DNA of 64,000 nucleotides from Thalia democratica. Its lineage: Eukaryota. Shown here piece by piece: positions 33,590-36,148 of this stretch. The position numbers and the translations under genes are program-made. Numbering within the stretch: the stretch's first letter is position 1; every line of letters starts with the position of its first letter. The notes under the pieces were generated by a model. It was not told the DNA's origin. It worked only from the letters and a program-made list of their open reading frames with translations, and ran no database searches. Where the stretch lies: contig OZ241829.1 of assembly GCA_965202585.1 (NCBI GenBank), positions 31,434,001 to 31,498,000 of the forward strand, written 5' to 3'.

Positions 33590-34000
33590 CATAGGTTAAG
33601 TCAAAAATAAAATAAATACTTTTTCATTGATACTTTTAATGCATTATATATGCATATACTTGGTATCATTATATTTAGATTATGTATACTGACTAAGTAC
33701 ATAGATTATACATAGGTTAAAGATTAAGTCAAAATGAAAGCAAAAACACTTTCATTGATATTTTTGATGCATTGTATTTAAATATTTGGTATCATTATTT
33801 AAAGATTAAGTATTTTTTATTAAAAAGTCATAGATTAAGTAAAAAAGAAAGCAAAAATATTCGTTTATATTCTTGGAACACTAGATGTATACGTATTTAT
33901 ATCATTTTATATAGACTAAATATATAGATTGCTTGTAGATCATAGACTAAGTCAAATAGAAAATGAAAACACTTTCACTGATAACTTTGGTGCTTTTTTG
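33590..34000 (+). repeat. Degenerate tandem array of four ~115-bp units; the last unit contains the ATG and signal-peptide codons of the secreted Tg1 gene
   Basis: Units start at 33590, 33711, 33829 and 33941 (catagrytaagtcaaa...). Unit 2 holds the uORF MKAKTLSLIFLMHCI* (33734-33781), versus MKTLSLITLVLFC in unit 4. Confidence 0.8.
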
Positions 34001-36148
34001 CCAACTTTTGAGCACTTCATTTGCCTTTAAAAGAAAAGATTCGGAAGAATTCAAAATTCTTTCTACAGTTCTGGAAAAATACTCACTTGAAAATTTATCT
34101 ATTCTCGAACTATATTTCAACGAAAAATTTTTCATCGAAAAACACACAAGTGCTGATTTTGACGATGTGAAAAGGTTTAAAGAGGTTCTTTTAAAAAAAG
34201 TATTTCCGGGTTATCCCAAAACTAACAAACGCAGTAATATTTCAGAAAGCTACTGCAGAGGTAAGTTAAATGAAGAAGGTTCGTCTGCTGAAGGTAATTT
34301 GACGTCATATTTCAACGGTTTCCTAATCAAAGTCGATGATAAATGGAAAATAAGAAAGGTCGAAGATAATGAAATTATTTACCAAGAGGTCGACGGACAC
34401 AACGTTGTGGACATGGTGGAGCTTTTGTACGCCTTCCGTTCAAACGGCCGAGAGGACCCTGGCAACTTTAAATCGGTTGATATTCACGCGGAACAATATA
34501 AAATAGGCAAGTTGCTTGCGTTGATCAAAACTAAATACCAGCTGGAAGGAGTCACGAAAGAAGGCGGAAGAGCCATGTTGGACTTTGAAAAGGAGTTTTA
34601 CGACAAGCACGACCTCGGATCAGATCTGGTCCAGAAGGTCACCGACCGGAAGTACGTGTTTGACGAGTTTCAGCACGGCGGAGACGAACTGTATTTCGGA
34701 GCTGACGGAGAAAAGCGTGAGGTTTACAAGCGTTTTGGGAACGCTTCGTTTGCATGGGTTTTCGATAGGCACCTCGGAGATTTTCTTGGCATCGGGTTGT
34801 TTTATAACCAACTGCGAGATCAATTTGATGCAAAAGACATGATCAAAGAGTTGATCGAAGGTTTAAAAGAAAGAAGATTGTACTCAAACGCTGAAAAGGA
34901 GCAAGTTGAAGGAAACGAAGAAACAGCAGCTGTGGAAAGAGCAACTGAGAAAAATGCTGATATTGAACAATCTGTTTCAATGACGGGTAATTTTCTATAT
35001 TGATTCTAAATTGTTTTAAACTTAATGTAGACAACTCGTCTAACATTATAAATAGTAACTTATTGCATAATGCTAAACTCTAAGGTACTTTCAAGTAAAT
35101 TATTTTAATTTCCTTAAGTTAAAGCAGAAAAGTATCATTTAACTTTTTTTATGTTTTGTGTAAAACTTTGTAAAAAATTGTTCATTTGACCGAAAAAGTA
35201 GGTTTATAACAGCTCATATCTTAAAAAGCAGAATACTCTACTGAAAGTCTAAAACCACACCAAACTGGTAGAGACAAAAATACAAAGCTCAAAATGAACA
35301 ACAAACAAATCGAAAGAACTGAAATATTACCGAATAAATTTTCTAATAAGAAAGTAAGTTGTGTTTATTGACATTAGAAATTCCCTTTTATATGACTAAA
35401 CAGTTTTATTAAAAAGCTTGAACACACAACAAGAAAAAAAAACTTAAATTCTGTATTAAACTTTGCTTCCTGGTGATTACAATAAACAAAATATTTCATT
35501 GTAAAGTCAATCCAACCTATTATAAACTAAAGTTTTTTAATTAATTTCTGTACAGCTACCTTGTAATGCACACCTGAAAAGAGCAATGAAAGTAAATAAA
35601 GAAAGTTACAAGTATTGGAAGCCATTTTGTAATCCGAATGGTTCATATAAAACTACTGAAAAAATTGTGAGTTGTGTAAGAAATGCTATTAACCTAGTTA
35701 CTACAAACTGCTTACTTTATATAAATAATTTAGAAACACGCAACTTTATTTTTACACGCATATTTATATTATGAGAATTCTGTACTTTTAGTAACTTGCA
35801 CTTTTTGATAATGTTTTAGTTGGATAAAACAGTTTAATTATTTAAACATATTATTTAAAAAAAAAGTCAAAGAAATTCATTGTTTGTTAATAATACAATA
35901 ATAAAGTTAGTAATGGTATAAAGCAAAAATAAAATATTTATATTAGTTTGTTTAAAATGTTATATTAAAGTGAAGTTATAGTTGTTATTTATTCTTAAGA
36001 TTTTTTTTTGTATTTTAATAGCAAATGAAAATCTATAATATAAGAATATAAGAATATATATTTACAGTGTAGAAAAAGAAGATGTTGGTGTGTCGACAAT
36101 AAAGGAATGTTCATGAAACAAATATTCAAAACTTCTGAAACTTGTTAA
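33963..36148 (+). CDS. Unannotated secreted protein (445 aa): signal peptide, unrecognised ~320-aa domain, C-terminal thyroglobulin type-1 (thyropin-like) domain
   Basis: Exons 33963-34986 (G|gtaatt), 35232-35353 (cag|, |gtaagt), 35556-35666 (cag|, |gtgagt), 36068-36148 (cag|, TAA). Phases 1/0/0 are consistent and the frame is open. N-terminus MKTLSLITLVLFCQLLSTSFA is signal-peptide-like. C-terminus LPCNAHLKRAMKVNKESYKYWKPFCNPNGSYKTTEKICRKRRCWCVDNKGMFMKQIFKTSETC has six Cys, PxCxxxGxY and the diagnostic CWCVD. AATAAA at 36361. Confidence 0.85.

Follow-up and report, generated by a model that had tools for sequence, protein, structure and literature searches.

The locus examined here raises the question of whether an open reading frame (ORF) of 346 amino acids (aa), found at positions 33963-35003 of a 64,000-nucleotide (nt) stretch of the Thalia democratica genome, is a protein in its own right or the beginning of a longer one, and what such a protein may do. 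The stretch, hereafter the window, corresponds to contig OZ241829.1 (31,434,001-31,498,000, forward strand) of assembly GCA_965202585.1 and is designated C5:31434001-31498000 in our searches of the 802 Mb genome. An initial annotation regarded the ORF as an orphan, extended by three overlooked exons into a secreted protein with a thyroglobulin type-1 (Tg1) domain. Our analysis revealed that 33963-36148 on the + strand is an intact four-exon gene, with 1338 nt in frame encoding 445 aa. The mature product is predicted to consist of an N-domain (about 280 residues), a linker (about 80) and a C-terminal six-Cys Tg1 domain.

The four-exon gene and its thyroglobulin type-1 tail

The 346-aa ORF is present as described, and its last five codons (GNFLY) and stop codon start at the GT of the first donor site (34987). 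The exon borders read G/gtaatt, cag/AAT...AAA/gtaagt, cag/CTA...ATT/gtgagt and cag/TGT...TGT taa, so that all introns are GT..AG and the three exons missed by the ORF track continue the frame. The same structure was found in L001, an intronless 1510-nt contig from JGI whose product, P0002 (448 aa), shares 75% aa identity with the window protein; the contig aligns to the window in exactly four blocks, which are the four exons. Global alignment of the two coding sequences showed 86% identity and no gap at 34986/35232, 35353/35556 or 35666/36068, and the junctions that had been put forward are thus borne out through this relative. Since the introns of every genomic copy are missing from L001, the contig is read as a processed transcript. 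Further intronless full-length relatives (P0032, P0010, P0035 and P0030), which come from at least three subfamilies, show the same order of N-domain, linker and Tg1. P0030 originates from 'merc' (run ERR1719354), which we take to be a protein-level assembly of Tara Oceans metatranscriptome reads.

Protein calls from DNA contigs (P0001, P0004, P0005 and P0007) end in GNFL- or similar (GNFLY, GNFLF), reading into intron 1 like the window ORF, and L002, a genomic relative, keeps its colinearity with the window across intron 1. The ORF-only calls seen here (346-355 aa, ending GNFL-) run into intron 1 and miss the Tg1 tail, and the same truncation therefore probably affects comparable entries in public metagenome protein sets. 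Overall, we consider the gene model and the architecture of its product to be nearly certain. The features of the gene are listed in Table 1. Downstream of it, the first AATAAA/ATTAAA motifs are located at 36333 and 36361.

Table 1. Coordinates of the gene and its parts in the window
Feature	Position	Strand	Remarks
Upstream region	33557..33962	+	3-4 decayed direct copies of the 5' untranslated region (UTR)/start region; two TATATAG, at 33908 and 33921
Signal peptide (predicted, 21 aa, cut after ...STSFA)	33963..34025	+	Sequence pattern and conservation
Exon 1, phase-1 donor	33963..34986	+	Signal peptide; alpha/beta N-domain at about 22-300 with a single Cys (98); acidic disordered 301-341
Intron 1, GT..AG	34987..35231	+	Read-through yields the 346-aa ORF ending ...GNFLY
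Exon 2	35232..35353	+	Basic linker, net charge +5; conserved motif K-M-x-N-K-Q-I-E-R-T-x-I-L-P-x-K-F
Intron 2, GT..AG, phase 0	35354..35555	+	
Exon 3	35556..35666	+	Tg1 first half: Cys1, Cys2, motifs W-K-P-x-C and D/N-G-S-Y
Intron 3, GT..AG, phase 0	35667..36067	+	Interrupts the Tg1 domain immediately before Cys3
Exon 4	36068..36148	+	Tg1 second half, C-RKRR-CWCVD ... C; stop codon immediately after Cys6
3' UTR, at least this long	36149..36271	+	L001 aligns through 36271 at 81%

The 63-aa product of exons 3 and 4 matches the Pfam family PF00086 (Thyroglobulin_1) with 32.9 bits (E 4.5e-8) against a cut-off of 20.6, in agreement with the complete six-Cys Tg1 domain that had been recognised by eye. 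Five full-length relatives all match PF00086 as well (best E 7.7e-8). The cysteines lie at 385, 407, 420, 425, 427 and 445, with the motifs W-K-P-F-C and C-W-C-V-D, and neither these six Cys nor the two motifs vary among five full-length transcripts and the 12 paralogue tails that were read completely. The tail is of subtype 1A, with a W-C-V core and three expected disulfides, and Cys6 is the last residue of the protein. Instead of the usual Q before Cys3, the family has K-I-C, a variation that is not disqualifying under the Pfam score. In loop L1 the Pro before Cys2 is kept, while the Gly is absent in the window gene, in P0002 and in most paralogues; the C9/C535 subfamily has a Gly in L1 (K-T-G-L). 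The basic RKRR reported immediately before CWCVD is present and occupies the L2 position. In most paralogues this Cys3-Cys4 loop is also basic (RKRR, RKRQ, KKRS, RKKQ), and one subfamily carries IEKR. When compared with solved structures, the tail of P0002 matched thyroglobulin repeats (E 8.8e-21), IGFBP-5 (0.013), IGFBP-6 (0.021) and saxiphilin (0.42). A homologue search with the tail only (P0002 residues 345-448) returned the family itself only.

The N-terminus consists of MK, a 14-residue hydrophobic core and small residues at -3 and -1 (S-x-A), and C13, S19 and A21 are invariant or nearly so in 13 family members, which fits the signal-peptide-like start noticed in the initial annotation. 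No hydrophobic anchor follows in the mature protein of about 424 aa, and classical secretion via a predicted cleavable signal peptide is very probable. Net charge was found to be -8 in the N-core, -4 in residues 301-341, +5 in the exon-2 linker and +11 in the Tg1 domain (Tg1 pI 9.7), the linker, which is predicted to be disordered, shifting from acidic to basic. The dibasic pairs noted earlier are indeed frequent, but their suggested role as convertase sites is not sustained. They are not conserved as R-x-K/R-R motifs, the sole such motif is the RKRR within the Cys3-Cys4 loop, and the linker of the window gene, whose basic cluster differs between paralogues, holds no furin motif.

The N-domain and its gene family

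The mature N-domain is a mildly acidic alpha/beta domain with a single invariant Cys (C98), the one that had been counted in this part. Its strongly conserved blocks are Y-F-N-G-Y-L-I-K-V-D-x-W-K-I-R-K-V, L-G-S-D-L-I-Q and F-G-x-D-G. Pfam gave no match for the first 341 residues of the window protein, and a Pfam search with the N-part of 23 members at E up to 10 returned nothing recurrent and no PF00219; an ESM Atlas feature search with the N-domain gave no usable match. Seven proteins, P0002 among them, were found when the N-part was searched, and a 13-member profile run against 1.84 billion representative proteins retrieved 24 matches, all of them family members or fragments. Where the source of a match was listed, it was environmental data (ENA, JGI, merc or Logan), and none of these proteins has a name. 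The earlier impression that this part belongs to no known family therefore holds across Pfam, the profile search and the structure libraries considered below, and the taxonomic spread of its matches is confined to this family in marine plankton sequence data.

AlphaFold2, run on a 23-row alignment with P0002 as first row, modelled a mixed alpha/beta N-domain over residues 30-300 with a predicted local distance difference test (pLDDT) of 85-95, a disordered linker over 306-381 (pLDDT about 30) and a Tg1 tail at pLDDT 50-64. A structure search with the N-domain in PDB, AFDB, ESM Atlas and a viral library yielded no credible match. The modelled fold may thus be new. Its novelty is not proven, because the better model exceeds 400 residues (448), which may weaken a single-domain match, and the N-only model is mediocre. 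Unmatched and confidently modelled in its core, the N-domain is the most valuable part of the protein and could yield a new fold.

The term orphan is no longer appropriate, since the N-domain has 36 matches in the genome and exon 3 is present in 18 copies with 75-100% nt identity, and since expressed relatives exist in marine plankton data. Of the 17 other exon-3 copies, 16 are preceded on the same strand by an N-domain exon at a distance of 0.5-2.3 kb. Counted in this way, the family has at least 17 loci in the T. democratica genome. Wherever the tail exons of a locus were read, the N exon is followed by the linker exon and then by Tg1 exons 3 and 4, with ag/.../gt borders, six Cys and a stop right after the last Cys. 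An intact N exon was found at about eight loci, including that of the window, while at least seven carry stops or frameshifts, among them a copy on C312 with 95-99% identity; the introns of the family are AT-rich and its paralogues include pseudogenes. The multicopy nature of the family also accounts for a tenfold excess of contigs over exons 3 and 4. Known relatives occur solely in marine plankton DNA or RNA data (PRJEB4352, JGI 3300018893, ERR1719354), and the family is, as far as these sequences tell, lineage-restricted, expanded and expressed in marine plankton. A literature search found no paper linking salps or oikosins to such a Tg1 family.

The four-exon layout is common to all subfamilies read, down to 37-39% N-domain identity, and any fusion of the N-domain with Tg1 would therefore predate the radiation of the family. 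The other Tg1 repeats of the genome (C2 at 72.4 Mb and C9 at 47.6 Mb) differ from the family's split before Cys3 in that a single exon carries most or all of the domain. Some members depart from the common form. L015 (C1:15172000-15177500; ORF 2182-3681, - strand) has a first exon of 500 aa followed by the usual linker and Tg1 exons, and the acidic end of its N-part holds about five tandem repeats of about 32-38 residues, each with V-D-N-V-S-E-E-V-K-G-F-D-K-S... In the distant member L019 (C5:73802500-73808000) there appear to be two N-domain-like segments (matches 1804-2040 and 3218-3559); the linker- and Tg1-like exons that come after them have the variant loop C-H-K-N-R-C-W-C-V-N.

Selection was assessed by pairwise Nei-Gojobori comparisons of the window gene with one transcript, one genomic relative and six paralogues. 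The ratio of nonsynonymous to synonymous divergence (dN/dS) lay below 1 throughout, at 0.24-0.34 in exon 1, 0.26-0.65 in exon 2 and 0.08-0.37 in the Tg1 exons; for the closest relatives it was 0.24-0.29 in exon 1 and 0.20 in the Tg1 exons. In most paralogue comparisons dN of the tail was 3-5 times below that of the N-domain. Against L004, L007, L015 and L016 it was 0.08-0.11 in the Tg1 tail and 0.27-0.52 in the N-domain, while the gap was smaller against the C9/C535 subfamily (0.31-0.32 and 0.48-0.51, respectively). Conservation is highest in the Tg1 domain and in the K-M-S-N-K-Q-I-E-R-T-x-I-L-P-x-K-F motif of the linker. A second organism (run X3) is represented by contigs that may derive partly from paralogues; of their 15 exon differences, 10 were synonymous.

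Possible roles of the tail and the N-domain

With respect to function, we lean slightly towards a protein in which a conserved basic tail serves as a docking or inhibitory module and carries a diversifying N-domain as its head. That the tail, meaning the linker motif together with Tg1, is a common binding module is rather probable, because it is the most conserved part of the protein; the N-domain would then be the variable, diversifying head. Tg1 domains of type 1A inhibit cathepsins through a wedge of loops L1-L3 in the protease cleft, and glycosaminoglycans can tune this inhibition (PMC10889554). As a single mechanism, the likeliest, though on balance doubtful, is a similar, thyropin-like one, in which the Tg1 tail of the window protein would wedge itself tightly into the active site of papain-like cysteine proteases, several of which are encoded in the genome; the inhibition could possibly be modulated by polyanions through the basic Tg1 surface. 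This step is tentative: inhibition by the tail is plausible and is not predictable from sequence.

The likeness to thyropins (MEROPS I31: the p41 invariant-chain fragment, equistatin, saxiphilin Tg1 and tick Ir-thyropin) lies in subtype 1A, the W-C-V core and the Pro before Cys2, and, for tick Ir-thyropin (IrThy), also in the basic surface, IrThy being modulated by glycosaminoglycans. The present family differs from thyropins in having one Tg1 only, at the extreme C-terminus and behind an unrelated domain of 320 residues. Moreover, the Cys3-Cys4 loop of p41 has six Gly-rich residues, compared with the four basic residues RKRR in the family.

A number of points weigh against the favoured explanation. 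Many Tg1 domains, such as those of nidogen, thyroglobulin, IGFBP and SMOC, are not protease inhibitors. The L1 loop of thyropins normally has a conserved Gly and Pro, as in IrThy and p41 (PMC10889554); as described above, the window protein has the Pro without the Gly, and it does not keep the usual Q ahead of Cys3. Confidence in the modelled Tg1 domain is low. Splicing of the window copy rests on relatives at 86% nt identity, and the runs that hold the stretch are DNA-like. A complex predicted between the Tg1 tail and the mature domain of a cathepsin F-like protease from a marine contig (L027) scored 0.01, with the fold of the partner itself uncertain, and counts neither for nor against.

Among the alternatives, the one that survives best is that the basic linker and Tg1 tether the protein to sulfated glycans, mucus or tunic, while the N-domain does the work in a structural, lectin-like or recognition role and no protease is inhibited. 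We regard this as possible, if on balance doubtful. Tg1-containing IGFBP-3 and IGFBP-5 bind heparin, and the tail of the window protein has a net charge of about +16, with RKRR in a loop that is kept basic in most paralogues. Furthermore, the Tg1-containing SMOC proteins are reported to bind heparan sulfate or heparin (PMC10464977), and Cys98, which is single, conserved and free, might allow covalent dimerisation. However, charge alone is weak evidence, and the subfamily with IEKR lacks a fully basic loop. SMOC, testican and nidogen resemble the family as secreted modular proteins in which Tg1 stands beside other modules and which can bind heparan sulfate, whereas the family has no EC, Kazal, EGF or other known modules.

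Descent from an IGFBP-type gene is also conceivable, the Cys-rich N-domain having been replaced and the Tg1 tail, with or without the N-domain, binding an insulin-like or other small secreted ligand. The best single-domain matches among solved structures are the C-domains of IGFBP-5 and IGFBP-6, and the low-confidence model of the Tg1 tail gave as its only structural match a weak one to the C-domain of IGFBP-1 (2dsq_G; Foldseek probability 0.44, template modelling score by target 0.43). As in the C-domains of IGFBP-3, -5 and -6, Tg1 is C-terminal after a disordered linker, and basic residues immediately precede CWCVD, as we take to be the case in IGFBP-3/5. The layout of an N-domain exon, a linker exon and Tg1 over two exons presumably also resembles that of IGFBP genes, although a literature search on IGFBP exon borders yielded nothing of use. 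On the other hand, the similarity is weak, with E-values to IGFBPs of only 0.01-0.7, and the N-domain, an alpha/beta domain with one Cys, lacks both the IGFBP motif and the N-terminal 12-Cys IGFBP domain (PF00219). The genome contains three PF00219 matches, and the two loci read, both on chromosome 10, are CCN-type genes without a Tg1 domain, so that no IGFBP with Tg1 was found in two of the three; the third lies on C834. The CCN-type genes (C10:18640000-18646000 and C10:21746000-21755999) show exons for an IGFBP-N domain, a VWC-like domain, TSP1 and a C-terminal knot. We consider an IGFBP-like carrier improbable.

A similarly low probability is given to the possibility that the main product is the 346-aa read-through protein, with intron 1 retained and without Tg1, or that the window copy is silent or decaying. 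Only three sequencing runs hold the stretch, and all are contig sets that also span the introns and are thus taken as DNA, none showing transcripts. Joints in the read layout, e.g., from 35674 to 36053, differ from the splice sites and fit paralogues with shorter introns. Several paralogues and a near-identical copy on C312 carry stops or frameshifts, and the locus lies within a local inverted duplication. Nevertheless, all four exons of the window are intact with canonical splice sites, the dN/dS values for the closest relatives are low in exon 1 and in the Tg1 exons alike, and spliced transcripts of relatives are present in at least three subfamilies.

The weakest reading sees in exon 1 a retro- or foreign (viral or bacterial) sequence that was captured and recently shuffled onto a Tg1 module. 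Shuffling or capture had been proposed from the single large exon joined to a small-exon Tg1 module, and the GC-richer core of this 1-kb exon would also speak for it. The reading is highly improbable, given that GC islands are common in the window and look like exons of neighbouring genes, that neither the 1.84 billion representatives nor the viral structure library provided a match outside the family, that the architecture is shared by all subfamilies read, and that the Tg1 module begins at a phase-0 intron and not in the classical 1-1 phase of shuffled modules.

Returning to the favoured reading of a basic tail with a diversifying head, the known Tg1 architectures are limited to those of thyropins, IGFBPs, nidogen, SMOC/testican and EpCAM, and the family adds a new one, i.e., a single C-terminal Tg1 after a large globular domain without a match in the sequence and structure libraries. 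A more specific proposal, which we put forward as rather speculative, is that the N-domain represents a new fold and family of a narrow pelagic lineage, probably salp-type tunicates, and works as a fast-diversifying recognition or effector head with the conserved basic Tg1 tail as anchor. The protein would then be an extracellular defence or mucus-net component without counterpart among known Tg1 proteins. If the tail inhibits cathepsins or binds sulfated glycans, the family would provide a handle on the extracellular biology (feeding mucus, tunic, defence) of ecologically important, little-studied animals.

Genomic surroundings of the locus

The core of exon 1 reaches 49% GC, with GC at third codon positions (GC3) of up to 0.66, within an AT-rich region. 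The mean GC content of the window is 30.5%, and since short GC islands of 42-64% are common in it, this core appears ordinary. Many of these islands are found at 1-29100, where they mark exons of neighbouring genes, one frame being mitochondrial-carrier-like, while between about 29.1 and 47.9 kb exon 1 of the Tg1-tail gene is the sole GC island.

Upstream of the real ATG, at 33557-34008, three to four decayed direct copies of the 5' UTR, start codon and signal-peptide start were observed, with 66-80% identity and a period of 111-128 nt. Matches to 33679-33773 are also found at the 5' ends of L001 and L002. The two TATATAG motifs lie about 20-40 nt upstream of 33948, the first window base matched by the transcript of a relative, and the upstream region may have a promoter role.

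The gene is located inside a local inverted duplication, whose right arm (36801-38033) has two left-hand partners, at 32049-32699 and 29114-29630, with which it pairs at 83-95%. About 250 nt of the first 350 nt of the right arm weakly match (69-80%) the 3' flanks of the chromosome-8 paralogues, which makes the arm look like a 3' flank of the family itself and not like a transposon. Genome-wide, the inverted repeat occurs only at the window locus and on C312, where it flanks a broken near-identical copy of the gene in the same layout. This second copy of the whole palindromic locus (C312:16532-24900) has exons 87-99% identical and flanks 84-92% identical to those of the window, and its exon 1 carries stops or a frameshift. 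The copy is either a strongly diverged haplotype carrying a null allele or a recent, decaying segmental duplicate.

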